A DNA stretch of 55,797 nucleotides from positions 43,832-99,628 of the forward strand of contig CALSCP010002280.1 of assembly GCA_943704425.1 (NCBI GenBank), read 5' to 3'. The position numbers were made by a program, and so were the translations under genes. The stretch is from Ministeria vibrans ATCC 50519. Taxonomy: Eukaryota > Protista > Filasterea. Shown here in pieces: positions 10,265 through 46,630 of the stretch (position 1 is the first letter of the stretch; every line of letters starts with the position of its first letter). The notes beneath the pieces are model-generated. The model did no database searches, was not told the DNA's origin, and saw only the letters and a list, made by a program, of their open reading frames with translations.

Positions 10265-11426
10265 ATGTCGGGGGCGCCCAGCAAGGCAGGCAAAGCGTCT
10301 GCGTCTGCGTCTGCGTCTGCGTCGGGCTCCGGCGCCGGCCTGTCCATGGCGGACAATTGGGACCTGTGCCCCAACTGCAACGTGCGAGGGTTCATTCACA
10401 GCGACTACCGCACGGGCGCCGAAGTGTGCGAGGAGTGTGGCGTTGTCGTGCGGCGACTCATCTCCGACGAATCCGAATACCGAACCTTCAGCAGCGACAA
10501 GGGCGACCAGCAGCCTGGTAAGGACTGCCCCCTCCCCCGGGGTGTTCTTCCTCGTTCTTGATGCGCCCGCGTGTCTGTTTAATAGCGAGAGACATTAAAA
10601 AACGAATGGATACGTTTTCCATCATGAACCCCCCTTTCGTTTTTTGTGGCTAGATCGCAACCGTGCGGGTCCGGCAGAGAACCCTGGTGAGGAGATTGAC
10701 TTGAGTACGGGTATTGAGCAGTCGAATGCTGCGTCGCGTGCGTTGGGGCTACAAAACTCGCAGCTGACCCGGTCAAAACGCGACCGGCTGCGCGGCGACG
10801 TTTTTGGCGAGATTACGACGATCTGCGGTCGGCTCGGCGTACCCAATACGACCAGCTCACGTGCTCAGTCGCTGTACAAGCAGTTTGACGACCGTACGGC
10901 GAAGCGGACGAGTCACAAGGCGTCGGCACTCGCGGCCGCAAGTGTCTTCTTGGCGCTGCGGCGCGAAGGCATTCCGCGCACGCTCAAGGAGCTCTGTGGC
11001 GTCGCGACGAACACCACCAAGAAGAAGATCCAGCGAGCATTTACGACTATTGCAGATGCGCTCGGAGGCGAGACGGGTGTTGTGACCACGGACCATCTTG
11101 TGGCGCGGTTTGTGTCGCGCCTCGACATCCCCTATGCCACCGGCCAAGTGGCTGCGTATGTGGCACGGCGTGCAGTCGACCTGAGCCTGGCCAACAGCCG
11201 TGTGCCCACCACCGTTGCCGCAACAGCCATCTACATGACCATGCAGCACACACCGACCCCGCTCACGCCCGCCCAGGTCAGTGACGAGACGGGTGCTGCC
11301 GCCTCCACCATCCTAGGGGCCTACCGCGACATTGTCGATCGCGAGGCGGACCTCTTTCCCGTTGACTTTTGGAAAGGTGTTCTTGAGCGGCGCGAACAGG
11401 CAAAGCAAGACAAGACCAAAAAATAA
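10265..11426 (+). CDS. GTF2B: Transcription initiation factor TFIIB (2 exons)
   Basis: Zn ribbon CPNC...CEECG, B-reader SEYRTF, DRNRAG, and cyclin folds (LRREGIPRTLKEL; VARFVSRL; PTTVAATAIYM). Intron at ~10518-10653. Confidence 0.88.
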
Positions 11427-22776: not shown

Positions 22777-25138
22777 ATGTGCGGTGTTTGCGGACTTCTC
22801 TGCGGCTCTGAAGAGTCTCTGGTGGCTCCCGAACTTCTGGAGGGACTCAGCATGCTGCAGCATCGCGGACAGGTGACACACACACGCAATAAAAAAAAAA
22901 AAAAACCTGTCACTTGGGATGATTTACTCAAACAAGTGTTTGATTAGGATGCGGCGGGCATCATGACGTGTGCCAAGGGCGGGACAGTGTACCAGTGTCG
23001 CGGAAAGGGCCTGGTGCGCGACGTATTCACGCAGACGCGCGTGCACCAGCTGCAGGGACACTTTGGCATTGCGCACACGCGATACCCGACGGCCGGGACG
23101 ACGGCCACCGCCGAATCACAGCCCTTTTATGTCAACAGCCCCTATGGGATCTGTCTGGCTCACGTATGTTTGCATTTGGACGGACGGGAGACAAAAAAAG
23201 CCGTTTTTATTATTGTGATGAATGGACAGTGACACAACTTTGGTGTAGAATGGGAATCTGACCAACACTGAGGAGCTGAGTGACTTTCTCAAGAACAAGG
23301 CTCACCGACATGTGAACACGCACTCGGACTCGGAGGCGCTGCTGAACATTTTTGCGCATGAGCTTCTGACGACGGACAAGAGAAGGCACAAAGCAGAGAG
23401 GGGAGTCGCACGAGTGTTTACCTGACTGTGTTGTTGTTGTGGTTTACCACAGGATTGATCACCACGATGTGTTTATGGCCGTTGCCAAGGTGCACCAGCG
23501 CTGCAAGGGAGCATATGCAGTGGTGTTGCTCATTGCGGGCTACGGCATCATTGCCTTCCGTGATCCTCATGGCATTCGGCCTCTTGTCTTTGGCAGTCGG
23601 TAAATCGCTTTTTATTAGAAGAGAATGTAGAATTGACTCAAAAACGTCTCTGTCAATCGACACAGACCCAACACGCACAACAGCTCGCGCAACGACTACA
23701 TTGTCGCATCCGAATCCGTTGTGCTGGACCTCCTCAACTTTCCCGTGTCGTCGCAGTCGAGTGTGTGTCCTGGTGAGTGTGTCATCATCGAGAAGGACAC
23801 CAATGCCGTCCACAGACGTGTCTGTGCACCCCAGACCACTCTCACTCCATGTATCTTTGAGTATGTTTACTTTGCTCGTCCTGACTCGTAAGTCACACAA
23901 GTTTTTTTTTTGTTATGTGTACTGCAAGATGGGGAGAGCGAGAGGGTCAAGTCATTGATTTGAGTTTTTTTTTATGCATCACATTGAGTGTGATATATTC
24001 TCAACGTTATCAGCTCAATATAATTATGATTAAAATTTCTGATATTTGATAGGATTTTGAACGGAGTGAGTGTGTACCGTGCGCGACTGGCAATGGGAGT
24101 GGCACTGGCGCGGAAGCTGCGAGCACAGGGAGGGGATGTGCTGACGGCGGATGTGGTTGTGCCGGTACCAGACACGAGTCGCCCCAGTGCAATGCAGTTG
24201 GCGCACGAGCTGGGTCTGCCCTTTCGGGAGGTGAGAGAAACTGATAAGTCGGGGTGTATGTTTTGTGGGTGTGTGTGTGGGTGTGGGTGTGGGTGCGTGG
24301 AGTGTGAGTGACGGTGATTGAGTGAGAGCGGCAGTGAGTGAATGTGAGTGGCAGTGATTGAGCGAGATTGGTATTTGATCACTCAAAACGATCTAATATT
24401 ATCATAATATGTATGGTAGGGGTTCATCAAAAACCGGTACATTGGCCGTACGTTTATTATGCCTGGTCAAAAGGAACGGTAAGTGCATTAATAATAATAC
24501 TGTTTTATTTGTTTGTTTATTTATTCTTTTATATTTATAGACGACACGCAGTGCGTCGCAAGCTCAATCCAATGGCAATGGAATTTGCCGGAAAGAATGT
24601 TCTTCTGGTGGACGGTACAACAAAAAAACAATAATAAATTTATTAAATACTTTTTGTCTCACTCACTCATTGGGGCTTTTCTTTGGGGTTTTGTCAGATT
24701 CGATTGTGCGAGGCACAACTGCGCGTGAAATTGTGTCAATGGTGCGCGAATGTGGTGCTAAAAAGGTCTTTCTTGCGTCGTGTTCTCCCGAAATTAGGTA
24801 TTGTATATTTCACTTTAGACGCCCCCATCATAATAAATTCAATTTTATATTGTATTGTTTGCTTGCACATTTATACATTCGCACTCACACGCACACACTT
24901 GCAGATTTCCCAATGTGTATGGGATTGACATGCCGGTTGCGACTGAGTTGGTGGCACACGGACGCACGGGCGAAGAGATTGCACAGGCCATTGGGGCCGA
25001 TGGGGTCTACTTTCAGGTACGGACTGACTACACGCACCCACACGCGCACCCACTCTCTCTCTATCACTTTGTTTTTCTCTCTCTCTATCACTTTGTTTCT
25101 CTCTCTCTATCACTTTGTTTTTCTCTCTCTCTATCACT

Positions 25139-25180
<42 letters not shown>

Positions 25181-25218
25181 CTTTGTTTCTCTCTCTCTCT
25201 CTATCACTTNNNNNNNNN

Positions 25219-25316
<98 letters not shown>

Positions 25317-25784
25317 CTCTCTCTCTCTTTCTTTCTCTCTCTTTCTTTCTTTCTCTCTCTATCACTTTGTTTCTGTCTCCTTTCTCTCTCTCTCTCTTTT
25401 TTAATTATTGTTTCTGATCTATCTGTAGAATTTGAGTGATTTGGAGGAGTCGTGTCGGCAGTTCAATCGTGATATTACGTCGTTTGACACGAGTGTGTTT
25501 GACGGAAACTACGTCACAGGTAAGATGAATAGAAAAAAACCTACGCATAGGATGGTAATAACCAATTGGTAGGGAATGTCGATGCGGCGTACTTTGATGC
25601 ACTGGCGGAGAAACGACGGGACCTGAGCGGTGAGAAGAAGCAGGTGGTGGTCGATGTGACGGATGAAAGTGCAAAGGTGGAGCAAGGGCAGGGAAAGGAG
25701 AAGGCCGAGGCGAAAGCGACGACGGGTGCGTTGGACCGAGATGATAGCAAGGAGGTGTCCATTTACAACATTGGGAACGAGTAA
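22777..25784 (+). CDS. PPAT: Amidophosphoribosyltransferase (purF/ADE4); many exons
   Basis: N-terminal nucleophile MCG, QHRGQ|[48 protein letters not shown]|[18 protein letters not shown]. Confidence 0.96.
25055..25375. repeat. (CT)n tract with multiple ATCACTTTGTTT units and an N gap, in a PPAT intron
   Basis: Same compound motif as at 18145-18330. Confidence 0.85.
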
Positions 25785-26250
25785 AGAAATTTTATTATTA
25801 TTTTTGTTATTAGCATAATTCTTTTGTTAGTCACGTTGATCACGTGCATAATTCATAAAGCACACAAACTGATAACTCCGCCTGACACGCGCTGACAGGC
25901 AGAGACTTTGTGAACTGATCAAAAAGTTTAAGAATATCCATCACACAATACAGTCTAACACCGTCTCTGGTCTCTACTCTAAACTCTCCACGACCCAAGT
26001 AGTCCTGCAAGTGTCAGGTGAGAGCGATGAAACGAAGGTTGAAGGAAATAGTTGCTGCAACTTCCTCCACGGTTTGTGCGACTGATAGCTTCTGCTTTAA
26101 GATCGTTTTAAGCTTCCTCAGTTTAGAAAATCAATGAATTTTAAAAAATACTCTCTCTGCTAGAGAACCACAATGCCATGGACCACTTCACTATCGTCTA
26201 CCTTATTGATGCACGCGAAAATCAAATTCCGCTAAAATATACAAAATACA

Positions 26251-26258
26251 TATATAAA
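26251..26258 (+). promoter_or_regulatory. Putative TATA box for the permuted tRNA gene
   Basis: TATATAAA lies about 30 nt upstream of the tRNA 3' half. Confidence 0.6.
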
Positions 26259-26287
26259 GCACATTTTGGCCCAATTCCGTGCAAGGC

Positions 26288-26365
26288 ACGAAGAGATCGG
26301 GGTTCGACTCCCCGCTTACTCACTTTCCGGGTAAGTGGTATAACGGTTAGCATTCTTCGCTTCCA
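26288..26365 (+). tRNA. trnG-UCC: Circularly permuted tRNA-Gly(UCC): 3' half 26288-26322, 6-nt spacer, 5' half 26329-26365
   Basis: 5' half is GGGTAAG TG GTAT AACGGTTA GCAT T CTTCG CT TCC A. 3' half is A CGAAG AGAT CGGGG TTCGACT CCCCG CTTACTC A. Acceptor stem 7/7 (one G-U), anticodon stem 5/5, T stem 5/5; 72 nt when rejoined. Confidence 0.9.
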
Positions 26366-26368
26366 AGC

Positions 26369-26377
26369 TTTTTTTTT
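26369..26377 (+). terminator. RNA polymerase III terminator (T9)
   Basis: A run of 9 T begins 3 nt after the tRNA 5' half. Confidence 0.7.
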
Positions 26378-26821
26378 GCTTTTTTGGACAACATCTTCCC
26401 GAGATCAGAGATGTCTTTTTTTTAACTTTTTTATTTTCATGCTTTGTTTTTTGTTTCATCAAAAATAATAATAATTATTATTATTATTATTATTATTATA
26501 TTTTGGCGGTTATTGTGAATAACTTTCGTGAGTTCACATAAAAACTACCAGGTTTGCTGGCTTCTTACTTCTATGTATCCACTATTTACTATTGCGACCT
26601 GACCGATGTGAGGTCGGCGATTGTATCTTCATTGTATCAATTTTTGTGATTTTGTGCTTTTGCTTTTTCACTCGGTGTGATCATGCCAAGTCGTCAAAGT
26701 ACCAACTGCTTTTTAGCCCGCCCACACAAGCACGCGCCCACCCAAGCGGTAGATTTGAATCCTTTTAGCTTTGATAATAAAGAGCGTCGTTTTACTTGAA
26801 AATTTGCAAAACAGACCAGAC

Positions 26822-27602
26822 TCAATCCTCCTGAGGGAACCAGCTTGCGGGCAACTCGGACTCCTTTAGCTGCTCTGCGGTCGCCAGATTGTCAATGTTG
26901 TCCTTGCGGAACTGCTTGGAGTGCTTTGAGGCACAGTGGTCCTCGTAGAGCGCATGCGACTGCCACACTTCAATGAGCGAGAAGCGCGACGGGTCGTTGG
27001 TGAAGGAGCGCACTGCGGCATGGACCAGGCCCGCATCGTGGCGACGCGACTGCGCAAGGTACGTCCGCAGCGACTCTCGGAAAGCCCCGTTGCTCTCAGA
27101 TGTCACCTGACGCGACAAGTGTGGTTACATATATGTGCGACTCCAATGATGATATTGCTTTTCTAACTACCTTGAAGTTGCGGGTGATGACAAGGACGTT
27201 GTGGGCGCCAGTGGATGCGTCTGTGTGCTCCTCCTCGAGCGGTGCAAGCACCAGATGGCCATCCAGACGACTCACAAGCGACGCAAGTCGATCAATTTCG
27301 CTGCTCAGTGCACCGCCGCCCAACGAGCCACCGCTCACAACGTTGCCTGTAACATTAATAATAATTGTATTGTGGTCTTTAGTCCTCTTTTGATGATGAT
27401 GATAATAATAAATATAATATAAGAATTAATTTATAATACCGGAAGGAATGGACGTCTGAGTGTTGTACGAGCGTTGACGACGCTTTGATGAGGAGCCATT
27501 GTCGGCACTGACAACAGTGTTGCCAGTGCCCGGAGTGGACGCATCCACAGACGCAATGGTCTTGGTGAGGGCTGAAACAGAGACGGGGTCAGCGTGAGAG
27601 AC

Positions 27603-27654
<52 letters not shown>

Positions 27655-28759
27655 CAGGTAGCCACAAACAAGACACAAAAAAAGATGCAATGGAGTTGGA
27701 AAGGACTAAGACGCAAAGACAAAGTCAGTATGCAGAGACAAGAGTGGGCGTGAGATGACACAAACACACACACAAACAAGAAAATTGATAAGAAAAAATA
27801 AGAAATAATTCTGTTGCCTCTTCGTGCTCTTGTTATACCGGCTGAGACATAGGGTCGCTGAGAAAGCGCAATCTCTTCCAATTTGTCCACTGTCACATCG
27901 ACTGGATTCTGAAGACACTCCAATTGCGACAAAACCTAAAGATAAAAACATATTGGTGACACTGTCCCGGTCGCTTCTTCTCGAAACAACACACCACAAC
28001 ACAAATCTAAACTCGCGCTGACCTCTTTGAGCAGGAATCGCGTGCAGAACTGCTCAAAGTGACCCGATTCGCCGTACGTCTTGGCGGTCTCCACCAGAGA
28101 CCTCTGCACAAAACAACAATGTTTCACTGCCTCACTTGAGCCCATTCAATGTCGAATGGCGGGTACCTGAATGGCATGGTTCATGTGCTCCAGCGACGCG
28201 TAAATGTCACGGAAAGCCTAAAAGAAGCCAGTCAACAACATGAAAAAAAAAAACATAACAATGTAATGTTTTGCGTGTTGTACCTGAAAGTGTTTTGTAA
28301 AATACGAACACAACTCGCTCACATCGATGTTCCTGGGGACAACCAGAGCATAAGAGCCATCACACATATAGACACACACACACACACACACACACAGGGT
28401 GGAGCCACAAGAGCCCTCCTTACTTGCTCTTGTCCGCATCAACCACATCAAACAACTCGTCAAGGTCCGTCGAACTCAGCACTCCATCCTTGAAAAACTG
28501 CTGAAACTCATCGCGGTCGAGGCAGTTATCGTCTATACCGGCCCAGGTGAGTGTGTGTAGGGAGTAGCGAGAGGGTGCGCACGCACAGAGGCACAGCGAG
28601 AGGGCAAAAGGAGAGAAGAGGGAGACATTACGCGACTCATTATTCTGTTCATNNNNNNNNNNCCTGCGCCGACCAGGTCGACCGGCTACCGTTCTTGTCT
28701 GCGCGGCGGAAGACATCCTGGAAGATGGCATGGCCGGGCTCGGGCTGGGCATTGCTCAT
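26822..28759 (-). CDS. NECAB: NECAB-like N-terminal EF-hand calcium-binding protein with C-terminal ABM domain; multi-exon
   Basis: IFQDVFRRADKN|DDNCLDRDEFQQFFKDGVLS..LDELFDVVDADKS|..ELCSYF; FEQFCTRFLLKE; ABM domain ..FRESLRTY..IEVWQS..YEDHCASKHSKQFRKDNID..LPASWF. Confidence 0.88.
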
Positions 28760-29237
28760 GGTGGTTGGTGTGAGGACGGAAGGGGGGAGAGGGAACGACG
28801 GTCGGGAAGGAAATATTTGATTTACTTTTTAGTTTGTGAATTGTGACTTTGTGTACCAACATAGGATAAATAGTCCCGTCAGTCAGGTTCAAACGTGGTT
28901 CACAACGTTTCAACTCAATCGGATGATTTGACTATGTTACTCTACCAGCGCTGAATGGCTCTTTGAACGCTCTCGCGCTTTATACAAAGATCATATCTGC
29001 CGCTAATACCATAAACATGAGTGGAAAGGGATGTCAAGTGCGTCTCGCATCGATATTATATATCGTCCCTCACAGCCCTCTTGAACTCTCATAAACCGCT
29101 AGCAACGCGTTCTCGTTCCCGGCCGGATTCGTTATAATTACGGATTATCCTTCGCATGAATATCGCATAAGCTGTTGCTCACTATATTAATACATTACCT
29201 AGTTGTTTTGTTTTGACATAGTACAGCTCTCGATTCT

Positions 29238-30673
29238 CTATTTATTTCCCACCTAACATGCACGTACAACTCCCGTACAATCTCACTTTCTCCACACATC
29301 CACCACCAATGTCTGAGTCTTTCTGACAAACTTGGCTCGCGCACTCTCCTCATCCGCACTAAATCCCTCCGGAAATGTCACTCTCAACGGAGCATAAACT
29401 CCCACCACATCTAGGGGTAATTAATACGTATCAGTCTCGCTGGGCCACAACATTCCCCCCGTTCTACTTCTTCTTACCACACGTGAGGCAGTCTTTTAGC
29501 ACTCGCACATCACAGTCACGGATGGACGCACACCCGTCCACTCGAATCCGCACGCACACTCTTCTCCCCTCCTCCATAGTTTTGCTCTCAAACGCTGGCG
29601 TGCTCTTAATTTGCTCACCATCAAGTGGTTCAATCAGCGGCGCGCGGGTTATACGCTCATTGCTTTGGGTCTCAATCAACGTGTCAGCAGTGCCTGCATA
29701 TTCTTGCACACGAGCGACAAACGATGTGGCTGTCGCCTCAATCAACTCTGACTCTTCCTTCCCAACAACCTTTCCTTCTTCTTCTTCTTCTTCTTCTTCT
29801 TTTTCTTCTCTCTTCATGCCATCGCGCATTCCCTTGAGCACCTTGTCAATATCGAGTGCTGCAGCGGCGCTTGGAGCAACTGTGTCTGTTGTTTTCATCT
29901 GATCTTGTCTCTTCTTAAGCATAGCAACAGTCCCAGGATGAATGTCCTCGCCCCCGACGTATGTCCCGCCTGCAAACACCTTCTCAAGAGCAAGATCAAT
30001 GCCCAGCGCCTCACTGGCACACTGTACCACCACCGTGTCGATCTGAGAGTGGACAGTTTTGTTGTTGGTTGCTAAGCGCCTGGTTGACACTGATGGATGG
30101 CAGACAACGTCGAGAACCGTGGCTTGCGACCGCTCCGAGTCCAATCCTTTTGCACCAGTGATACCACCACTCTTATTCCGTGCAGGTCCAGCAAGTAGGG
30201 CCACCTGGTCGTTCTCTGGATGAGAGAGAAAAGGTAAATCAACCACACGATCGAGAAAAAGAACACAACCCCTGAAACTTTTCACAGGTGCAAATACAGA
30301 TCAAAAGCCGGGTGAGCGAGGGTGAGTCGCTCACTCAATGCCTTATATCTCTTTCTCCTTGAGCGATGAGTGTGAGCCATGATCCTGATCAGCTCAATGT
30401 GATCATGAACGAAATATTGTTTTGCTTTCTGTTGTCACCTTGAGACTCACGCACCACATTGCTGCAGCACACGTTAACAATGACCGGGGTACCGAGCAGA
30501 GGTTGGCTGCATTGGAGCGCATAGGAACGCGCCACAAGCTGAGCCGTCTCGCGTCGAACAGTGGTCGTCATTTCCTTCATCGAATCCGCGATGAACCGCT
30601 TGTATGCCTCGGGATTGCTCGTCGACAAAGCATCCAATGATGTCCACACCTTGCGAAGCGCCGAGCTGTCCAT
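29238..30673 (-). CDS. PIH1D2: PIH1 domain-containing protein 2-like (PIH1 plus CS-like domain); exact stop uncertain (29238 or 29242)
   Basis: VWTSLDALSTSNPEAYKRFI matches the PIH1D2 N-terminus. Also VIVNVC and VLDVVCHPSV, and C-terminal SARAKFVRKTQTLVV. Confidence 0.78.
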
Positions 30674-31030
30674 TTTTTCAAGCAAGGAAAATAAAAATAG
30701 GAAACTAAAATTCGCCAAGTTGAGTGGGATTTTTCCACCCTCAATTCACACACTCTCCGTTGAGAGCCAACGCCCAACAGTTGACAATTATTAATAAGCA
30801 CTGAGGTATACCAGCACTCGTCGACGACTGTCAATGCATTGATAAAGAAAAATTGAAATCTCATTGAGGTGATAAGTTTTTTTTAACTCGCTCGACCGTT
30901 GATTTTGATCCAAAAAAAAACAGTTTTATCTTCTCTTCTTCAACTCTGACTTACTCCCATCTCCCATCCCAGTGATCTGACTGATCCCACAAACAAGAAG
31001 ACTTCCCACGACCCGCTGGACTATTTAACC

Positions 31031-31453
31031 ATGTCAGACACGCTCGCGAGTTCTCAGGTTCGTTCGGAGCTAGAGAAGCTTAAAACGATCTTAAAGCAGA
31101 AGCTATCAGTCGCACAAACCGTGGAGGAAGTTGCAGCAATCAGGCAACAGCTAAAAGACATTGAAAGACGCGATAGTGCAGCGATCAATGTTACTGAGCT
31201 CCGCGTCACAGCGGTACGCACACAACTCAAGCACCAACACAATTGATCGTTTCTAAAATTTTCCCATCATCGAACCATCATTTCCTCTCCAAAGACTGTC
31301 ACCTACAAGGGATCAACAATGGAAAAGCTCCAGGGTCCTTCTCCTATTCCTAGAAGCAAGCGTGTAATTGACGCTGTCAAGTGTCCTGGAAAATGTATTC
31401 GTCGCAAGGTAATTATTCAATTGATCTCGGGAGTTGTGGTAACAGGCACTTTA

Positions 31454-31546
<93 letters not shown>

Positions 31547-31774
31547 AACTGTATTCTGAGTATATAGGCTCATTATGTGCACAACAAAAAAGACTTTTAC
31601 GAGCACATGCTTAAGCACCACAGTGAATGCGCGCCGTTTGCCCTGAACAGAAAGTACGTTGATGGAAAGTCCAGAACCCAAATCAACTGCCTTCTCTGTC
31701 CTCGTGAGACGGATGCGTCGCGAGGACCCGCTGAAGCCGTCGACCATCTTTTTGCGTCTCACAGCAAAGAGTAA
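31031..31774 (+). CDS. Small twin zinc-finger-like protein, paralog A (3 exons)
   Basis: Helical N-terminus ..IERRDSAAINV..|; KCPGKC..NKKDFYEHMLKHH; CLLC..RGPAEAVDHLFASHSKE*. Confidence 0.72.
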
Positions 31775-32547
31775 CATGAACTGTACGAAAATGTGATTAA
31801 AATTATTATTATTATTATTATTATTATGATTACAATACAAAATTAAATCTTTTGAAAACGGACTCTTATCTCCCCGTATTGGATACTATCACTGTCCTCT
31901 TTAAGAATTTAATACACATAACGAGTTGTCTGTTTTTTTTTTGTTATTTTAAGACCCATATTGATGAGTGGGTTCAAAATAAAAACTCACAATGTTTCAT
32001 TTGTGTTTCCACTCCTTTAACCCGCACGCATCCCTAAGCAGATAGATGGACTTCTGGACAACACGAAGCATTCATGACGTTGTATATATAGTTCCCTTTA
32101 ACACTCAAGTGTTTTTAACACTCTCAGTGTAAATATAAGCAACTGGGGGACATCCCGGTTTTTTTGAGGGTACTTACTCCCTGACGCTTGGCGAAAAAAT
32201 ATGAATAAAAATAATAATAATATAGTCTTCTTCAACGCGCCGTCTTCTAATCGAGTCCTTTTCAACAAGAGTCCTTCTTATCAAGGTATCATTCATGAAA
32301 GTATGCATCAGCCTTGCTTTTTCTTTCGAACGCGAGATATTGCGCGCTTTCTCACTTCTCACAGAATCACACGTCATTCCAAATATAATTCGTCATTATG
32401 ATTATCGTCACTTTTTTTTCATCTCTGCTGACCTTTCGACCCTTCTACCTCCCTCCGCCCTCCACCCTCCCCTGTCTCCTTCCCCTCGACGCGCGCCATC
32501 GCCGCATCTGCACACCATTTTTCATTGATACTTCGCCTACTGCGGCC

Positions 32548-33105
32548 ATGTCAAAAAGATATGCCAGCACTCAGCTCCGCTCGGCGGTGGATAAGAAAAA
32601 GCGAGAAATGGACACAACCCTGGCGTCTTCTTGCCTTGATACGAACACGCGAAAGCATCTTGAGAAGACAAGAACGCAACTCCAACGACGCGATGCAGCT
32701 GAAGTCGACGTTGCCTTACTGAAAACCAAAACTGTTCGTGAATTCACGAATATATTTGAAACGATTAATTTTTGTACGTTTTTTACATAGGCGATCACTG
32801 TCGAAAAGGGCACTTGTACTGTTGAAAAGGTGGAAGGAGTGGCAGACACACCCATGGGTCCGGTTACCGTCCAGGGCTACAAGTGTCCGGGGGGTTGCGC
32901 TCGACGTCTCAAAACGCACTTTGTGTTCAACAAGAACGCCTTTTGCGATCATGTCGTCAAGAACCATAGCAACTGCCGTATCTTTGCCGAGTCAAGCCAC
33001 GCCGGGCAAAAGGGAATGTACGAGTGTCTTGTGTGTGCGGACGGGAAGGCACGGGGGCCTTCTCCGGCCGTCGATCATTTCTTCATGAATCACTCTCACG
33101 AATAA
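32548..33105 (+). CDS. Small twin zinc-finger-like protein, paralog B (2 exons)
   Basis: ..LQRRDAAEVDV..|; KCPGGC..NKNAFCDHVVKNH; CLVC..RGPSPAVDHFFMNHSHE*. Clearly similar to 31031-31774. Confidence 0.72.
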
Positions 33106-33451
33106 ATCCAATTTTTAACCGCACCTTTCAAGCAAAGTCTAAAAACGATCAAATTAATTTATCTGTTATATCAATAATAATTTTAGATTTTTTTTAAAAA
33201 AATTAACTTTGGAGCAATGCGGATTCCCTCATGGCCCACGAAGAGTACAAGCCATTTAATACAGTCACCACGCGAAGATACAACGCCAGTCACGAAGACA
33301 AAATAATAATAATAATAATAATAAAAAATAATAATAATAATTATTATTTTATTATTTTATTATAATCTTTATTATTATTATATTTTTTATTTATTTATTA
33401 CCAATCTCAACAAAAAGCGACAACACAAACTTTGATACAAAACTTGAATAC

Positions 33452-33530
<79 letters not shown>

Positions 33531-33537
33531 ATTATAT

Positions 33538-34751
33538 CGTGCGCCGCCATCCCACAGCCACAGCAACAACAACAACAACAACAACAACAACTGCAACAAC
33601 CACCGCTGGAGAGCCCAGAACACTTCCTGCTCCACTGTGCTCACCCAGCGGTGTACCGACACCGACACGACTCACTGGTCGGCAAGACCCTTGCCGAGGC
33701 ATTGCGCGCGACCAATGACACGCACTATGAAGCACTTCATCCCCTGGGGGAGATGTACAAATGCTTCATCGTCGCCGTCAACGCCACCCATTGACTCACC
33801 CTTCCGAACCCCTCGTGTTCCCCCCCTACCCATCCATATCTCTGTACTCATAATCTAACACACAGTCACGACAACAAGCACACCAGCCGCCCTACAGCCG
33901 ACCCGCCTCGCCTGTGTACCACGGGAGCGCCCCGCAGCCACCTGGACTTGCCGCCGCCGACCACCGATCCGATTGCCTCAACCACGACTTCGACTTTACA
34001 CTCCTTGCCGACAGACACCTTCATGGTGTCAGAGCCCTATGCCTCCNNNNNNNNCTTTTGCGCGCTTCAACATCCCCGCCGGCGCGTCGGTCGACACGTT
34101 CCGGTGTCGGGCGTGCGCAGCCATCCCACAGCCACAACAACAACAACAACAACAACTGCAACAACCACCGCTGGAGAGCCCAGAACACTTCCTGCTCCAC
34201 TGTGCTCACCCAGCGGTGTACCGACACCGACACGACTCACTGGTCGGCAAGACCCTTGCCGAGGCATTGCGCGCGACCAATGACACGCACTATGAAGCAC
34301 TTCATCCCCTGGGGGAGATGTACAAATGCTTCATCGTCGCCGTCAACGCCACCCATTGACTCACCCTTCCGAACCCCTCGTGTTCCCCCCCTACCCATCC
34401 ATATCTCTGTACTCATAATCTAACACACAGTCACGACAACAAGCACACCAGCCGCCCTACAGCCGACCCGCCTCGCCTGTGTACCACGGGAGCGCCCCGC
34501 AGCCACCTGGACTTGCCGCCGCCGACCACCGATCCGATTGCCTCAACCACGACTTCGACTTTACACTCCTTGCCGACAGACACCTTCATGGTGTCAGAGC
34601 CCTATGCCTCCACTGGGGGTATGGCGTACCATTGCGATTGCCTCACTGGATAGCGTCGACACAGCACTATGACCTGCCACTGTTCTCCCATGTTACCTCT
34701 AAAGTTTCGGTCGAGTTTGCAAGGCGGTCTGGCTGTGTCTTCGCGTGGTGA
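33538..34751 (+). mobile_element. Degenerate 3' fragment of an RLE-type non-LTR retrotransposon, present as two near-identical ~500-bp tandem copies split by an N gap
   Basis: CRAC...ESPEHFLLHC...RHRHD (CCHC knuckle plus RHD), followed by RSD...DFT and KVSVEFARRSG. Interrupted by stops. Copies at ~33538-34046 and ~34112-34611. Confidence 0.6.
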
Positions 34752-35291
34752 CTGTATTAAATGGGTTGTATTCTTCTTCTTCTTATTATTATTGCATAAT
34801 TCCAATCTTTTGAGTTACTGAAAGTGATTACTAATAACGAAGCACTTACGACGACACACAGACTCGCACACTGAGTCCTAAGAACTGAGAAGTAGCTAAT
34901 GTACTGAGTAAGTCACTGAGTCATGAGTATGATAATTGTCACCTGTCTGGCTGGCTGCGGCTTATCTTTTTCTTTATCCGGAGAAGATAATACCCCACAG
35001 GCCACATGCTTCCACGTTGACTGTTGGACGGTGCTTGACTGCTTGTCAGACAGTTCAAATAACTCTACAGATTTTCTGATCACATTCTCCTTATTTTATT
35101 ATTATTTTAACTCCTATTGGCTATTGATCGCTACATGAACTATACCAACTACATAGTACATCGTATGAAATGCAATCATTTGAGTGATTTAAAAGTTGCC
35201 GTCGCCGGCGTGTGGTTTCAAAGTTGACACTGCGAGCGACCTGCACAATAATAAATATAGTCACTTGAAATATGTTAGTTATATTTTTACG

Positions 35292-38200
35292 ATGAAGAAG
35301 TACAAGCTCGTTGATAGCGCACCAGGCGTCGCCGGTGCTCGGCCAGCAGCGCTCTCTCCGCGTCCATTTACTTCACCAAGACCCCGGAAACGGCCCGTCG
35401 CGCCCCGTCCCCAAATACCGACACCTCAAGCAGGTATCAAACGCCGCGCGTCGTCGCCTACGCCACAGTCCTCCTCGCTGTCGTCATCATCATCACCCGC
35501 ACCTGCACCGTCGCCGTCTCCGCCCCAGAAGCGAGCCAAATGCCCTGCTGCGCCCACCGCCAAGTCAACACCACCCAAGAAGCAACCGTCCACGCCCAAG
35601 ACCAACACACCGCTCCCCTTGCCTCCACAACAGCCCGCTCCCGAACTCAAACTCGCCCAGCCCGACGCTCCCATGCCGAAACGGCCGCGGATCGAGCCGG
35701 GCAAGGCGAAAAAGCGCTCGACAGTTGCATTGCGGACGGCCACCTCAAAGGCCGAGTCGAACAGCCGCTTCGAGGAGACCCGCAAGCGCATTATTCGAGC
35801 GTTGAAAAGCACGAAATCCTCCAAGGTATGAATGAGGGCGCTTTGAGAGCAAGCGGGAGGAGTTGAATGATCACCTGTAGGACTCCTCCGTTGGAGGCGC
35901 CGCCGACCTGCTGCCGGCCATTCCCGGCTTATTGGTGTGCAACGAGCCGACTCCCGTGCCGCTGACGGACCATGCGATTGCGCAGGTGAAGCAAGCCAGT
36001 GTGGTGCACGGTCGCTACTCGAGCTACTTTTACGAACTGCCATCGCATCTCGTGCGCTTCGTTCATCCCGAGTGGGACACATGTCTGGCTGGCCTTGTCG
36101 ATGAGGTTGCTGTCGCGCTGGGGTTTGAAAAGAAGTCGCTTCAGCCTCACTTGCATTGTCTCGTCCTCGTCGCACCCTCATCACACCCGTACACGCCTCC
36201 CACCAACGACACACACACTGCCGCTCCCCATCGCGCCACGCTCCTCGTGCAACTCCCATCGCACTGCCAGGGCGGCCATCTTCACCTCAATGGCTCCCAG
36301 CACACCTACGACTTTGGCGCGTCCACCTCTCTTGCTCCCTACGAGGCTTTTTACGCCGCCTACACTCACCCTCCCGCCTTCTCCGCCACAGCAGAAGGCA
36401 ACGAAGAAGAAGAAGAAGCGTCTCGCTCACGAGTCCCTCAAATCCAACCCCTTACTGAAGGCCATCGTCTCCTTGCCATCTACCACCTACATCCTCAATC
36501 ATCACCACACAGTTCCTCTTTCTCTTCTTCATCCCACTCCACGACTGTCTCTCCCGAACGAGAACTCGCCGACGCCCTCACCGCCTGGGACGACTCCACC
36601 ACGCCCTGTCTCTTCCTTCCACTCAAGCACCGCAAGTCTATTCTTAGTTGTACGCTCGACGCCAACGGTCAGTTTGCCACGCTCACTGGTAAGGACGCGG
36701 ATCAGCGCGCGCTTGCGCGTCTACAGGCCGCCAATGCCCTACTCCCCGCCTCCAAGCGCATCCGTCTTACCCTTGTCTCTGCCACTCGCACCGACTTTGC
36801 CACGACTACCCTCTCTTCTGCTGCGTCGTCTTCGTCGATCTCGTCAGATCCCTTTGCTGTTGAATGGCACCACGAATCGACCTCCATCCACTGCGTGTGG
36901 AACCGTCTTCCACCCGAAATGCCTCTCAGTCTCGACGGTGACTCGTCCTTCCAGGTCACCAATCGCTCCCTTCTCGACCGTTCTTCCTCCTTTTGGGGCG
37001 ACCTCTCCAGCCGAACACTTTCCCCCTCTGCCACTCTGCCTGCCGGCATGGAGCAGCAGACACACTACGAGTGCACGATGATTGCCATTTGGCGCTGCTC
37101 CACCGAATTCACTCTCCTCTCCAGTGTCTCTGCCGACGCCGCCTTTTACGCCTACCGTCTCGCCGCGGCCGACGACCGTGTGCCCGGCGAGCAACTGGCG
37201 GCCCTTGCCAACCGCGTCTTTGCCCATTCCGACTACGACTCGCTCCCCATTGCCACGCTCATTCGTGGCGCCTACCTCAACGATGCCTTCCTACTGCGTG
37301 TCCTCGAGCGCGCCAAGGGCCGCGGCCTCGAACACATGGGTGGACATATGGGTCCGCTTACAGTGCGTCGTTGGCCCTCGAAACTCGCCGAGGGTGTCCT
37401 GGCACGACTGCATGCCAAGCCGCAGGGCGCCATTGTCGACATGGACAGCACCGCGTGCGCCGCCTTGTGCATCTCCCTTGCCTGTGCGCTCTATGCCGAG
37501 GCCGACGAAGACAGACGCAACGACACAGACATCGACGTGGTCGACGGTGGCAGCAGTGGCGCGTTGCTGGAGCCCGCAACACTGCTGGGCAGCACTACCT
37601 GTGAGTGCAGTCTCATTGTAAGCTACTCGCGTCGCCTTGTCGAACTTCTGGCACGTGTCAAGGTGGGCGATGCGAGCGAACGACTCTGGTCCGTCGCGAA
37701 TCTTGCCAATGACTTTGCCGAGCTTGTGCGCACTCTTATGGACGAGCTCATTGTGCGCTTCTGCGTGCCCCATTGCACACAGGTGACGTCTCTCGTGACC
37801 ACTCTCATTGTCAAGCGCATGCCACGCGTCCGTGCTGCCGCCTGCCTTGTGTGGATGTTCGAATCGGGCTCGATGACGCGCGCTCGTCTTGAGCCTTGGG
37901 TAATGCCCGTGCTGAATCGCACGCGCTCGGATGTGCCCGACGGCAAACTCACCGAGGAGGAGCTGGTGCCGTGGATGTCCCTTGCGGCTCACATGGACCA
38001 GAGTGTCCTTGCCTACCCGATTCTGGAGACCTTCTGTGCTCAGAGCAATGCTTTTGTCAACAGTTTTGACCGTGACGAATTGGTTCCCGGCTACGAACGT
38101 ACCACGCCCACCTGGCAACGCATCCTCGAGACGGTCGCGCGCCGTCGCAAAATGTCCCGACGAACACCCGTCGCCGACTACCGCAATGTGCTCTTCACAG

Positions 38201-38304
38201 TTCCCCCTCCTGGTGATATGGCGACTGCTGCTGCAACTGGTAGTGGCGCTGGCGTATTGCCAAGTTGGGCCAAGGGAAAGAAAGGATCGAAAGCAAAAGA
38301 ATAA
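35292..38304 (+). CDS. Large protein: Pro/Lys-rich N-terminus, degenerate 2OG-Fe(II) oxygenase-like domain, helical C-terminus (2 exons)
   Basis: A phase-0 intron at ~35826-35880 joins the two long ORFs. Motifs PGLLV..PVPL, ELP..VRF..PEW..L..LV..V..ALG, ATLLVQLPSHCQGGHL, PLTEGHRLLAIYHL. Confidence 0.72.
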
Positions 38305-38593
38305 ATGTCCAAAATACTGTGCAATATAATGTAATTAATAGTATTTTTTTCTGCCAGATTACATTTCGTACCTAGAGGGGGTCAATCGACGATGCAGCAT
38401 ACACCCGATGTGAATGAAACAATTGAGCAGCGCCAAAAGCGCCTTTGCAACAGTTTGTCAAGCGACGCGACGCATATTTTTAGAGGGGAGGGAGAACAAG
38501 ATTAGTCATTTAACTGGTTGTGGTGGGGCGGTTGCAGAGAAAGTGGAGCAAGATACAAAACTTATAATGGTACTTTATTGTATTTACAGGAGA

Positions 38594-40518
<1,925 letters not shown>

Positions 40519-41210
40519 CTATTGCGGACCAATTCCATTGTAATCAATCGGCTGAAACCCCAATTTAAAGGCGGGAGAATCATTCTATACAAAAAGACTC
40601 AAAGTTGGGCTTAGGAATTAGGATTGGCATACTTTGAGTCTCAAATCCAACGAATTTATATCGTAAAAAAGAGGATCGGAAATGAGAGAATTCGAATCAA
40701 ATCCTTTGGCTTTCCATTGCTCGAAATCAGTGTGATTGGGAAACCTAAAACCAAAACAAGGCAAACAATAAACACACAAAAAAGTGCAAAAAAAAAAAAC
40801 TGACATGATGCTTTGATGGAGCGGATCAAAGTAGACATTGGAAAGAAAGAAGGAGTCACGATAGTCCGAATCAGACGCAACAGTGGACCCCACGGCAATA
40901 TTTGTCGTGAAGCGCATTCCGTGAGGAAGAAGCGGATACGTGGGGTTTCCTCCGCCATTACAACTAAGGAACAACTCAGCAAGTCAGTTTTTCCATAATG
41001 GCGTGCATTGAATCTAACCTTTTAATGACACCCGAATGGTCGATTAGACCGGCATTCAAGATAATGTTGTTTTGAGCGGAGTTTGAACATCCACAGTGGA
41101 AATAGATTCCACTACTCGTCACATTTGTTATGACATTCTGTGTCATATTCACAGAGCTTACTTGCTACAATTATAATAATAATAATAAGAATACAACCCA
41201 TTTATTATAC

Positions 41211-41243
<33 letters not shown>

Positions 41244-43405
41244 AATTATTATTATAATTATTTATTATTATTGTTATTCTTCTTATTATTATTATTCTTA
41301 TTATTATAATAAATTATTATAATGAAAAGATTTGTACACCTTTTCCATTTTTGACATGATAATAATATGATTATACCTCATCCATGTAAATACCGTTTGC
41401 GCCATATTCCGCATGAGATCCGCCCTGGATCCAATTGTTGGCGATTAGAGTGGGGATGGCACAGCCTGTGGAGTGGTTGAAGCACTGATTGTTGCTGGTC
41501 GAAATATAGATACTAAAACGTATAATAAAATTTGTTATTTTGGTCCAGGAAGTGAACAGGAAGTCTTATTTTATAATAATTATGAACACACTAAAGAAAT
41601 CATTATTTTGTGTCCACTCAAGATTTATATACTATCTTACCCCCCAAAATCAGAGAGAATTCCCAAACCGTAATTTTCAACTCGATTGAACGAGACATTA
41701 AAAATATAGTCAGTGGTCTGTGAATCGGTGACGATTCCGTATTGAGCAAAAGAAGAGTAATAGCACCCAACGCTATATAAAAAAGTAATAATAATCATTA
41801 TTATTATTATTAGTACTATTAATTATCATCTTAAAAATGAGTCAAAAATACAAGTTTACCCTTTCACGGGCAAACCAGATTGCCAGGCAATGAGAATTGC
41901 GCCATAAGGAGAGCCAACGACTTTGTTGTGATGGACGGAAATCATCGAGTGACCTTTAATGCGAATGCCCGATGGTTGTTTGAGGTAAATAAGTCCCGTG
42001 CCGTTGATTGAGTTGTTTGCAATTTCAATGTGCGAGACATTATGGTCGTTGAGAATGGAAATTGCATCTGCTCCCACATGTGAAAAGAGGGAATTGCGCA
42101 ACGTCAGGCGAGTGACACCCAGTCCCTTATGTGCAATAAGAATTGCACTGGCACTCACATGAGAGAGACGAAGAGCGTTGAGATGGCAGTCGGAGGATCC
42201 GCTGTGGATTTGAATGGTTCCTGTTGCGGCAAAATACGATTTGAAGCGCCCTTCGATTGGATCGGACGTGTAGCGCAGGGACAGACCCGAAATGTTTACG
42301 TTTGAGACGGAATTCAGATCCAACAGAGTCGGTAGAGTGGGAATAAATGCGTCGCAGAGTATAGACGATTCAGAGAAAACCGAAATGGTCTCTGCGACAC
42401 TGTCCACATAATACTAAAGCAAAAAAAAATCAATCCAATAATAATAACAACTAAAGCAAATAAAAATCAACACAAATATATAACTCTATTCATGTACTTC
42501 CAGGAAGTACATAGCACAGGTATAATAATACGAATAAACGGTTCAAATTACCTCTCCTTCTTGATCGAGTCCTTCCAAAACATTCTCAAGAATGTAACGG
42601 CGATTTTTTGGATTGTGTCCAATGGGCCCTTGTGGGTATGTCAGAAGAACAGTCTGTGCAAAGATGGAACGTTACGAATGAATATTGCATTGCTTTCGTT
42701 GAGGTTTACTTTGTTGCTTTCATGGACAGACTGAATGCGATGCCACTCGCCTACCCAGGCTTGGAAGACGAGAAGGCGAATGTCGTTGAGGTTGTGGAGT
42801 GTCGGGCGAATGTCGCTGTTGGCGTAAACAAAGCCAAGGGAGTCGATGGCGGGACAGATCGTGCTGGAGCACGGCTGCAAGGGCGCCTCCCACAGAAGCG
42901 TCGAGCCGTGCCCGAGGCCGCGCGAAGGGTCGGCAGGGTGTGCGTTGGGGGTGCGAGCGGGCAAGGCGCGTCGGCCGTCGGCAAAGTGCAGCTGCAGGGC
43001 CGCGCCCGTCTGCGTTGCCACGCCCCGCTTGAGTCTGGCGACGTACACGTTCTTCAGCGTGGCCGACGGTTGCCATTCGGAGGGGCGGATCACAGTGGCG
43101 CCGTGCAGCATGGCCTCGCGACCGGCTGCGGCGTCGGGAGGAAAGAGCTCGACGCTGGTGTCCGACGCAAGCTCAACTGTGTCGGTGAGCTGGTGCACGC
43201 CGGCGTGGACGTAGACAGTGGCCTCTTCGCGGTGGCCAGGTGGCGCCTGCAGACGCGCGCGGCGTACGTGGTTCATGGCGGAGTTCAGCGAAGGGTATGT
43301 CAACAAACCAGCCTGATCTGTCGAGCCAACGTGTACGATGATGCGTCCCATCGCACCACACGTGCTCGCAGCAACGACCAACAGTATGGCTGCAAGTATG
43401 TTCAT
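40519..43405 (-). CDS. Secreted right-handed parallel beta-helix protein (GH141-like / pectin lyase fold); multi-exon
   Basis: Signal peptide MNILAAILLVVAASTCG; VYVHAGVHQL; PARTPN; RYILENVLEGLDQEGE; GIYMDE; SLISDPLF; terminal SPAFKLGFQPIDYNGIGPQ*. Confidence 0.82.
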
Positions 43406-43652
43406 GAGGAGAGAATATTTTTGAGAAATAGCTAGTCTTCATTGTTCACTTATTCAATATTCCACACTATTTGTCACTCATTCGATACTACTTTGTCATT
43501 CGTGTGAATCGTGTCAATTGAGTAAATTGTGTCTCAGCGAATCAAGATTGAGAACTCATGAGAAGATCGCTTGGATATTCCTAAATAATTATTGAAATCA
43601 TCAAAATAATTTATCTCAAATCTAATCAAATCAATTATTTTATTCATTTCTC

Positions 43653-44254
43653 ATGATTCGTCTTCTGTCATCTCGTCTCTCGACAACGACCCGAGTCTGT
43701 GTGCAAGCACACACACCCGTGGCATCGACATTTCGCAGCAGTGCGGCGGCATTTGGTGAAGGTAGGCGCTGGTGCGTTCTCAGCCGTCGCGACGCACCAA
43801 CACTGTTTCGTGCGCTAGAGACCACCAACGAGGAGATAGGCGATGCAATTCGCCGGAAAATCACAGAGGGACTCAGTCCGGACAGGCTCCAAGTGATTGA
43901 CACGAGTGGTAAGGCGTTGGGAAGGCACAGTGCGCCGGTAAAACTGTCTCGTTCATTTCCCGTCTTAGGTGGATGCGGCAGCTTTTTCATCGTTCGCGTC
44001 GAGTCCAACGAGTTTGAAGAGAAGTCGATGGGTACGAGAGAATGCGTTTCGTCGCCCTGTTTGAGGCGTGTTTTGTTTTTGTTTTTTGTTGTTGTGTGTA
44101 TTATCATATTGTTATGTCACCGACACTAAAGATGTGTGTCACTCATGTAGTGGAACAACAAAAGATTGTGTATCGTCTTCTCAAGGAGGAAATGCCCAAG
44201 CTGCACGGGATCCGCATTGAGACTGGAGTTCACCCAGGTCTTGGCAAGCAATGA
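43653..44254 (+). CDS. BOLA3: Mitochondrial BolA-like protein 3 (4 exons)
   Basis: Arg/Ser-rich presequence; VIDTS|GGCGSFF..VESNEFEEKSM|VEQQKIV..LKEEMPKLHGIRIET. Confidence 0.85.
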
Positions 44255-44548
44255 AGTCGTCTCAGTCCTGCCGTCTGCAGGTTGTACAATAAAGGTGTGT
44301 GTTCCTTCTCAGGCACTCCTCTTGTTACTTGTTAGTGTGTTTGTTGTTAGCGAGTATAAATATGTGTGTTTCTTTCCCTAGATACTTGTTAGTTTGTTAC
44401 TTGTTATTGAGTTTAAGGATGAGCGTGTTTATATTGCGAGCAGAGAAATACACCATAATAATAAAGGCTTCTTTCATGAGTTTCAAAGACCAGACCATAA
44501 AATGACCATTAGACCAAGTCCAAACTCACTCCAAAGTTCAAACTTATT

Positions 44549-46084
44549 ATGCGCGCCCCTCTCATCTTATTAACAACCTTGCTCCTTGGCTTCTCGGTGA
44601 CTCTGGCTCGGCCGCGAGTCGCCGTGATCGGCGCTGGCATTGGCGGCGGTGCTGTGTCGTATTATCTCAAAGAGTCCTTGTCTCGCGTTGACATTGACGC
44701 GTACGACTCGCGCGACTACATCGGCGGACGCCTCAAGCATGTGGTTATTGATGGAACCACCGTCGAGCTTGGAGGTACGAAATTCTAGCTGTGAGTGAGT
44801 GTGTCTTGGACGCGTTTTCATCACGTCGCTGTCCTATATTGTTCTTAGTGCCGACCCTTTCCTCTGATTCAAACGTTGTCTTGTTGTTGTCCCCCTAGGT
44901 GACGCTTGGGCCAATGTCAATGTTTACGTTCAGGCACTTGTGAAAAAATTCAATCTTCCTGTCGATGTGACACAGGGACGTCCACACGCACTACTCACTG
45001 CGCCACGGGACCCTGCCTTTGGTGTATGGAATGGCACAGCCTTTGTGCCGCTGTTGGAAGAGGTGCTGGGCCATGCGGAGTCCGTTGCCCGTCTCGCTGT
45101 TGTGCTCGAAGACTTTCTGACTTCTCTTCATCTCAATTACGACCAACGCGATGCGCCCTTCAGCAAATCACACACCTTCACTGAAATATCGGGGTTTCTC
45201 AAGCCGGGAAATCTCCAACGCTACATGGGCAACACAACGGCACACTTTCTGACAGATCTTCATCGCATCCATTCGATTCTCGTCGAAAACGCCGTCACTC
45301 CTGTCCTGCGCGCCATTTACGACCAAGACAGCTCCATGCACGCCTTTGGTGGACTCGTCTCTCTCACATCGCTCACCAGTGCTCATTCAGTAGCAACTGG
45401 CAATTCAAAACTCGTTGAGGCCCTCTTCAATGCCTCTCAGGCGACAGTCCACCTCAACACGCAAATCACTCATATTGCGCAAAATCCGCACACCAAAACC
45501 TTCTCACTCCTCAACAATCAAACATACGATTACATAGTTATTGCGGCTCCCATAGAGCAAACTCACATTCACTTTGACCCTCCTCTGCAAAAATCCTTCC
45601 AAAATCGCCTCTTTGTCAATATCGTTGTCACTCTCGTGCGCGCCCAGTCCGTTCGTCCCTCTTTTTTCAATGTCTCTCACGTCCCTCTCAGCGTTCTCAC
45701 TTCCTCTTCTGCGGATCCCCTCACTCCCTTTGTCTGTCTTCAACCCGTTGCTTCAAAAATATGGAAACTCTTTTCTCACGAGACGCTCTCACAGTCTCAA
45801 TTGGGTTCCATTTTTGTTTCCGTTTCAAACATTACGGTAATTATCATGTTTTCGCTTTGTTTTGTTTGTGGGGGTTTCCCTTCTCTTATTTTCATGTAGG
45901 TTCAGTCTTGGCCCTACACATTTCCTGTGTTGAACCCAACAGATTCATTTCAACCCATTGAAATCACAGGTGAAAAAAAGATATCTTTCTGTCCGTTTCT
46001 TTCTGGTCTATTTCAGTTTATATTTTTCGACATGATAATAAAATTATTATTATTGTTATTATTGTTACTATTATTATTGTTATT

Positions 46085-46115
<31 letters not shown>

Positions 46116-46367
46116 TTATTATTAATAATTTATTATTATTATTATTATTATTAATTTATTATTATTATTATTAATTATTTTTGTTTTTGACGTTTGTGTA
46201 CTATTATTATTTACAACGTTCTTTTTATTACCCTTTTGTCAGAGGGACTGTTCAACGTCAACGCAATGGAAAGCGTTGCATCGGCAATGGAAGGATCGGT
46301 GATTGGGGGGCGCAATGTCGCGTTTCTCATTGCGGAGCGAGAGAAGAACAAAATCAATAATAGTTAA
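44549..46367 (+). CDS. PCYOX1: Prenylcysteine oxidase / farnesylcysteine lyase (4 exons)
   Basis: Signal peptide; VAVIGAGIGG; IGGRL..VELGG; RAIYDQ; GNSKL; YDYIVIAAP; WKLFS; C-terminal NAMESVASAMEGSVIGGRNVA. Confidence 0.87.
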
Positions 46368-46630
46368 CAGTACAATAATATTAATGATGATCATTTTTAA
46401 TAGTCTAGTCTGATTCAAGCCAGGGTGTCTCGAGAATCTTTCTTTACTTTTGATATTCTTTCACAACATTTGGGTAAAGAGGAGAATGGTCAATCTCAAT
46501 AACCAGACGGCGTGCGCTCCCTCCGCGTATCGTTTATCGACTACTTGAGCGCGCGCGCAACACAATGGCGCTGAGAACGGTGTAACAAATTGCGTAATTC
46601 TATTAATCCGTTTCAGTTGTATTTTTCTAC

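Follow-up and report, generated by a model that had tools for sequence, protein, structure and literature searches.

A probable circularly permuted tRNA-Gly(UCC) gene, one of at least eleven permuted tRNA genes in the filasterean Ministeria vibrans

While permuted tRNA genes have so far been regarded as a peculiarity of a handful of very small algae and a single archaeon, a short stretch of DNA from Ministeria vibrans raises the question of whether a non-photosynthetic lineage next to animals also keeps tRNAs in this inverted form, with the 3' half of the molecule lying upstream of the 5' half. An earlier note, made from the letters alone, had read the locus as a circularly permuted tRNA-Gly(UCC) gene in a host of opisthokont or holozoan type. 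Here, we consider the anatomy of this gene, its transcription signals, its predicted processing and its relatives in the same genome, using the window (the whole stretch of 55,797 nucleotides that was analysed) and the 29.7-Mb assembly of 2860 contigs, before then weighing the other readings that the locus allows.

The nature of the host, which had been guessed from neighbouring genes, can be read from the mitochondrial contig of the assembly (C1523), which has 55,949 bp, 25% G+C and about 30 tRNA genes. Its atp6 frame encodes 247 aa and its cob gene 394 aa from the first ATG, with eight in-frame TGA codons read as Trp. The published mtDNA of Ministeria vibrans has a size of 55.9 kb, an atp6 of 247 aa, a cob of 394 aa and UGA as a Trp codon, the cob length differing from that of four other taxa in the same published table (PMC7027106). 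The atp6 and cob genes and the mtDNA size thus agree with Ministeria vibrans (Filasterea), and the guess of a holozoan-type host is supported; a search for atp8 as a further host marker gave no usable hit. The window itself is nuclear and eukaryotic, with GT-AG introns in its transcripts and with KA1 (a kinase-associated domain at 946-2397), TFIIB-repeat, C2H2 and prenylcysteine-lyase domains among its products. Pfam searches of the ORFs adjoining the tRNA gene yielded no names, and two scans of metagenomes, one with the permuted unit and one with its 5' half, found no relative. In polyA RNA contigs, a gene on the + strand is polyadenylated at 25815 and one on the - strand ends at 26770, placing the tRNA gene in a 955-nt gap between two convergent 3' ends; these contigs cover the neighbour genes only, polyA libraries being uninformative on tRNA.

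The features of the gene, together with its permuted relatives elsewhere in the assembly, are collected in Table 1. Both halves lie on the same strand with the 3' half upstream, and swapping their order gives a complete cloverleaf. The break falls at 37/38, a so-called type II junction, with A37 ending the 5' half and A38 opening the 3' half, and the sequence agrees exactly with the halves, spacer and break that had been described. The spacer contains neither a T4 terminator nor CCA, and CCA is not encoded anywhere in the gene.

Table 1. Parts of the permuted tRNA-Gly(UCC) locus (positions in the window) and contigs bearing the other permuted tRNA genes found in the assembly.
Feature	Location	Strand	Composition or basis
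Upstream promoter element	26251..26266	+	motif match; TATA-like box then GCACATTT
5' leader end	26282..26287	+	leader/anticodon-loop pairing
tRNA-Gly(UCC) 3' half, 35 nt	26288..26322	+	tRNA positions 38-73; A38, CGAAG (anticodon-stem 3' strand), AGAT (4-nt variable loop), CGGGG-TTCGACT-CCCCG (T arm), CTTACTC (acceptor 3' strand), discriminator A73
Intervening sequence, 6 nt	26323..26328	+	CTTTCC, between A73 and G1
tRNA-Gly(UCC) 5' half, 37 nt	26329..26365	+	tRNA positions 1-37; GGGTAAG (acceptor 5' strand), TG, GTAT-AACGGTTA-GCAT (D arm), T, CTTCG (anticodon-stem 5' strand), CTTCCA (loop C32-A37 with anticodon UCC)
3' trailer	26366..26385	+	Pol III-type terminator; AGC, T9 (26369-26377), GC, T6
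Val-AAC permuted, two copies	C40		
Arg-CCG permuted	C335		extra intron
Lys-UUU permuted	C437		extra intron
Arg-ACG permuted	C491		
Ser-UGA permuted	C738		
Cys-GCA permuted	C1897		
Thr-UGU permuted	C2373		
Permuted gene	C2431		junction seemingly in D loop, plus 37/38 intron
Gly-CCC permuted	C2647		

In its native order the gene escapes standard tRNA scanners, as the earlier note had foreseen: ARAGORN calls no tRNA in the whole window or in the native 250-nt region, and Rfam calls none in that region, its sole overlap being a sub-threshold match to the T arm. The companion expectation, that the swapped order would score as Gly-TCC, also held, ARAGORN calling a 72-nt tRNA-Gly(tcc) once the halves are exchanged at 37/38. 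Running ARAGORN over all combinations of half lengths was uninformative, as the program calls nearly any sequence that keeps an acceptor stem and a T arm, and explicit stem checks were used in its place. The swapped molecule pairs at 20 of 21 stem positions (acceptor 7/7, including G2-U71; D stem 3/4; anticodon 5/5; T 5/5), the single unpaired position being A12-C23 in the D stem. All of U8, A14, A15:U48 (as R15:Y48), G18G19, U33, U54U55C56, A58 and A73 are there, and the identity features of a Gly(UCC) tRNA are likewise present, namely the anticodon UCC, C35 and C36, A73, class I form, a short variable loop and a Gly-type D arm. A73 together with C35C36 is what the identity rules predict for a eukaryotic Gly tRNA, and A73 is common to the Gly(GCC) and the permuted Gly(CCC) of the same genome. 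Unconstrained folding did not give the cloverleaf (z = -1.55), a failure common for unmodified tRNA sequences. No other T-arm-like hairpin in the window has tRNA context.

Signals for transcription were sought with a motif learnt de novo, by expectation-maximisation, from no other sequence than the 80 nt preceding each of 16 dispersed conventional nuclear tRNA genes. The learnt motif is 16 nt long, has the form GTTATATAGCACATTT and ends 17-59 nt before the conventional genes. Its best match in the window is the element upstream of the permuted gene, which scores 17.1 bits, ranks first among 111,564 positions on both strands (the next scoring 13.3) and ends 21 nt before A38, the first mature nucleotide. 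In eight other permuted genes the motif stands 22-36 nt ahead of the first mature nucleotide, and across some 29 kb of the virus-like contigs with clustered tRNAs discussed below there is no match above 11.6 bits. At the other end of the gene, the T9 run begins 3 nt after A37, and T-runs also follow the 5' part of most sister permuted genes as well as the conventional nuclear tRNA genes. A TATA-like box within about 50 bp upstream and a T-stretch downstream are both found here, as in ordinary tRNA genes of this genome, and the unit 26251-26377 is, to judge by its sequence, a set of the host's own tRNA transcription signals arranged around a permuted order. Six-frame genome searches for the B-block-binding subunit of TFIIIC (PF04182) and for Tau95 (PF09734) were blank at E <= 0.1, the Tau95 control having matched no genome. 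Elsewhere in the window, an ORF on the + strand (10644-11426) contains two TFIIB repeats (PF00382, E = 7.5e-18) and may encode TFIIB or the Pol III factor Brf1.

The break at 37/38 is flanked by a leader that ends in ...CAAGGC and a trailer that starts with AGC-T9. Within the leader, G26285 (position -3) pairs with C32 (26360), A26284 and A26283 (-4 and -5) can pair with U33 and U34, and G26286 (-2) and C26287 (-1) make up with A38 a bulge of 3 nt in which the 3' cut site lies. The central helix has 3 bp and not 4, C35 failing to pair with C-6, and the outer helix has 2 bp at best (G+2:C-6 and C+3:G-7). The arrangement thus departs from a strict bulge-helix-bulge, and a relaxed motif can be drawn in which the 3-nt bulge stands beside the 3-bp helix of positions 32-34 with -3 to -5; folding with the cloverleaf enforced prefers another weak pairing at the junction. 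Across the type II genes of this genome, the full 4-bp helix occurs in one of nine (Gly-CCC), and position 32 pairs with leader position -3 in all nine of the permuted genes with a 37/38 junction, other offsets from -1 to -10 pairing in only one to four of them. The same pair is found in all three conventional genes of the genome that have a canonical 37/38 intron. Eukaryotic endonucleases use an anticodon-intron pair together with a ruler on the mature domain (PMC3978253). With the 32:-3 pair taken as this eukaryote-specific anticodon-intron pair, the leader resembles the 3' end of a canonical intron and the trailer its 5' end. The genome contains two genes with a tRNA-intron endonuclease (Sen) catalytic domain and one multi-exon gene for an RtcB ligase.

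The gene is not alone. A census of the assembly with one IUPAC pattern (T loop, 19-49 nt, then U8-G10...A14...GG) gave 49 matches, which a filter for pairing between the 7 nt after the T stem and the 7 nt before U8 reduced to Gly(UCC) and ten others. As the census relies on this single pattern and the acceptor-complementarity filter it is a lower bound. At least ten further permuted tRNA genes of the same layout are thus present elsewhere in the assembly, a scan for the order 3' half, spacer, 5' half being what the earlier note had proposed. Their spacers measure 5-26 nt, and nine permuted genes have their junction at 37/38. In the gene at C2431:223955-224001 (-), which may be Arg-UCG, the 5' part apparently stops within the D loop (type I-like), with a 37/38 intron in the 3' part.

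Conventional genes, as found with the Rfam tRNA model, number 63, about half of them on the mitochondrial contig. Many of the remainder are in three very tight clusters, on contigs C2083, C585 and C2093, and the dispersed conventional nuclear genes cover only about 12 anticodons. Other kinds of disruption were also seen. A Thr-CGU gene in conventional order at C1793:34874-34983 (+) has a 29-nt intron apparently inside the anticodon (at about 35/36) and not at 37/38, and two weak Rfam matches on C277, at 5162-5219 (+) and 23469-23526 (-), each of 32 bits over model positions 8-63 and with no ARAGORN call, may be further disrupted tRNA genes.

The long ORFs of the window use GGA codons, and whether an ordinary Gly(UCC) gene exists elsewhere bears directly on the standing of the permuted one. 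A search pattern combining a Gly-type D arm with a UUCCA loop after it occurs at two places in the assembly (the control gave zero), in the permuted gene and at C2083:38475-38503. Besides the permuted gene, Gly(UCC) is found only in the mitochondrion, where the gene is AT-rich and unrelated to the permuted one, and on C2083 as one conventional copy in a virus-like cluster without a host promoter. This contig of 57,004 bp has two very tight clusters of conventional tRNA genes, the first at 7140-8069 (Val, Val, Arg, Arg, Val, Pro, Ala, Ala) and the second at 38151-38538 (Glu, Gly-GCC, Glu, Asp, Gly-UCC), the Gly(UCC) gene being the last of five tRNAs set 0-27 nt apart. The host tRNA promoter motif was not found on either cluster. 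In the region examined (28500-48300), long intronless ORFs on the same strand adjoin the tRNAs, and among the products encoded on the contig are a 1376-aa SF1 helicase that also bears a GIY-YIG nuclease domain, an rve integrase and a galactosyltransferase. C2083 looks like a virus or a large mobile element with its own tRNA set, and similar tRNA clusters occur on C585 and C2093. The permuted gene is therefore likely the sole non-mitochondrial source of Gly(UCC), although the cell might in principle draw on the conventional copy of C2083.

Taken together, these observations point to a working type II permuted nuclear gene for cytosolic tRNA-Gly(UCC), matured via a circular intermediate, a reading to which we give a probability of about 0.8. 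The original proposal of a circularly permuted gene is strengthened by the host promoter motif, the Pol III-type T-run and the anticodon-intron pair at the locus, and by the similar genes found elsewhere in the assembly. From these features we infer transcription, circularisation and use in translation, along the following lines. RNA polymerase III would start a few nt upstream of 26288, directed by the upstream TATA-like/GCACATTT element and not by the inverted A and B boxes, and would stop in the T9 run. The resulting transcript of about 90 nt would fold into the tRNA body, with the 6-nt spacer closing the acceptor stem and the short leader mimicking the 3' end of a canonical intron through the C32:G-3 pair and the 3-nt bulge. 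A tRNA-splicing endonuclease of Sen2/Sen34 type would then cut after A37 and before A38, and an RtcB-type ligase would join A37 to A38, giving a 78-nt circle from which RNase P and RNase Z would take out the spacer, CCA being added thereafter.

Other readings of the locus are possible. The gene might be a silent pseudogene, either untranscribed or not matured, that arose when a tandem duplicate lost its outer halves, with Gly(UCC) supplied by the C2083 copy or by an undetected disrupted gene. Such a reading gains from the conventional copy itself, from the junction without a strict bulge-helix-bulge and from the lack of any RNA contig covering the gene, this last telling nothing in either direction, as the libraries are of polyA type. 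A relic would however hardly be expected to retain an intact cloverleaf with every universal nucleotide, the best promoter-motif match in 55.8 kb at the correct spacing upstream, a terminator directly after the gene and, in its leader, the same 32:-3 pair as all its sister genes. The flanks contain no relic halves, and the copy invoked as a substitute sits in a tight cluster without a host promoter, beside integrase and helicase ORFs. We regard a silent relic as unlikely, though most of the probability left over by the favoured reading falls to it.

A transcribed gene need not make a tRNA, and the promoter and terminator would also serve for some other small RNA, such as regulators resembling tRNA halves or a tRNA-like structural RNA, given that circularisation is a prediction. 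Set against this are halves complementary in all four stems, a break exactly at 37/38 and the intron-like 32:-3 pair, a pattern expected only if the halves are rejoined, and a nuclear set otherwise devoid of a promoter-bearing Gly(UCC) gene, which together make a different small RNA very improbable. The possibility of an assembly artefact, whether through the collapse of tandemly arrayed ordinary tRNA-Gly genes or through a chimeric join, which had been named in advance as what would undo the claim, can be put practically at nil, since contigs from two separate studies cross the unit without difference, a unique promoter and T-run abut the halves, and neither half has a second copy in the 29.7-Mb assembly.

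The contig evidence comes from a comparison of the contigs of four public runs with positions 25100-27500. A DNA contig of one run (X2, from 2011) spans 26087-26450 with zero differences, and a DNA contig of another (X6, a metagenome of 2024 from a separate study) spans 25703-26450 with zero differences inside the gene, each reaching more than 80 nt beyond the unit at either end. Chance and misassembly are excluded, to the extent that contigs can tell, because DNA contigs of these two separate studies span the gene unchanged. The strain in the second run differs slightly, by SNPs at 25908 and 26175 and by a T inserted behind 25789; the gene is unchanged in it, an identity that carries no statistical weight at a divergence of about 0.4%.

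Two repeats lie near the gene. One, of 65 nt, is a dispersed repeat at 26052-26116, about 170 nt upstream, at which DNA and RNA contigs of several runs continue, on both sides, into other flanks, and the other is an (AAT/ATT)n microsatellite at 26460-26500, about 100 nt downstream, where the DNA contigs of both runs break (26451-26509). The 120-nt flanks were also searched for relics of lost 5' or 3' halves, none being found, and a tandem-duplication relic in the flanks was rejected, their likeness to the halves being no better than that of shuffled sequence.

The working gene that we favour would take the permuted layout into a non-photosynthetic lineage next to animals, implying either repeated independent origin or a much wider hidden distribution. 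For this gene the former may hold, as the earlier note had suggested. More broadly, Ministeria may store most of its nuclear tRNAs as disrupted genes, whether permuted, with ectopic introns or both, read from an upstream promoter without box recognition by TFIIIC, which would amount to a C. merolae-like system of independent origin in a heterotrophic opisthokont; we give this wider proposal an even chance. If it is true, circular pre-tRNA intermediates would be routine in a holozoan with animal-type Sen/RtcB machinery. Ordinary eukaryotic endonuclease logic, a mature-domain ruler with the 32:-3 pair, may suffice to maintain permutation without a strict bulge-helix-bulge. Permuted genes would also account for the shortfall of nuclear tRNA genes that standard scanners show in this genome, a warning that protist tRNA annotations made by standard tools are incomplete. 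Being culturable, Ministeria would further allow tests, in a holozoan, of circular pre-tRNA processing and of Pol III transcription independent of TFIIIC.

How does this compare with the permuted tRNA genes already known? A 2014 review lists 34 of them, from Cyanidioschyzon merolae, four prasinophytes, the nucleomorph of Bigelowiella natans and the archaeon Thermofilum pendens, with intervening sequences of 1-74 nt, a range that includes the 6-nt spacer described here, in which there is no promoter or terminator; Gly(UCC) is absent from the 34 (PMC3978253). A 2026 review places eukaryotic permuted tRNA genes only in unicellular algae. In the literature searched, outside subscription journals, we found no report of permuted tRNAs in holozoa or Capsaspora, none apparent in the papers on opisthokonts and nothing relevant among the papers listed for Ministeria, in keeping with the earlier note, and within that scope the gene falls in a lineage (Filasterea, Opisthokonta) without a reported case.

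The archaeon T. pendens shares with Ministeria the permuted order and a single-copy gene for a needed anticodon; its junctions are instead at 59/60 and are cut by an archaeal endonuclease (PMC3218864, Chan, Cozen and Lowe 2011). The two are not homologous by descent in any obvious way.

The type II permuted genes of prasinophytes and of the B. natans nucleomorph, reportedly described by Maruyama et al. in 2010, resemble the Ministeria gene in their anatomy. Those of prasinophytes (Ostreococcus, Micromonas) and of the nucleomorph likewise have the 3' half first and a junction at 37/38, a short intervening sequence (5-64 nt there, 6 nt in Ministeria) and an AT-rich upstream region with a T-run downstream (PMC3978253). 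Their junctions are of a relaxed hBH type suited to the eukaryotic endonuclease, a motif that can also be drawn for the Ministeria gene. They differ in that the Ministeria host is a heterotrophic filasterean of the Opisthokonta and not an alga, and in that Ministeria has a well-defined upstream motif common to its conventional tRNA genes.

The permuted and multiply disrupted tRNA genes of C. merolae are said to have been described by Soma et al. in 2007 and 2013, and offer a parallel at the level of the genome. In both organisms many nuclear tRNA genes are permuted (PMC3978253, PMC3728597), some permuted genes have extra introns (Lys-UUU and Arg-CCG in Ministeria), at least one junction lies in the D loop and standard scanners find too few tRNA genes. 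Both also have a TATA-like box no further than 50 bp upstream, in permuted as in ordinary genes, with a T-stretch downstream (PMC3978253). The TFIIIC subunits that went undetected in Ministeria are reported missing in C. merolae, the blank search in Ministeria not being proof of absence. In contrast, many junctions of C. merolae have a strict hBHBh' motif, whereas in Ministeria the full 4-bp helix is the exception and the 32:-3 pair is the invariant element, and expression through a circular intermediate has been shown experimentally in C. merolae and is a prediction for Ministeria. The anatomy of the individual gene is prasinophyte-like and of type II, while the genome-wide pattern of mixed junctions, extra introns and a shared upstream box resembles that of C. 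merolae.
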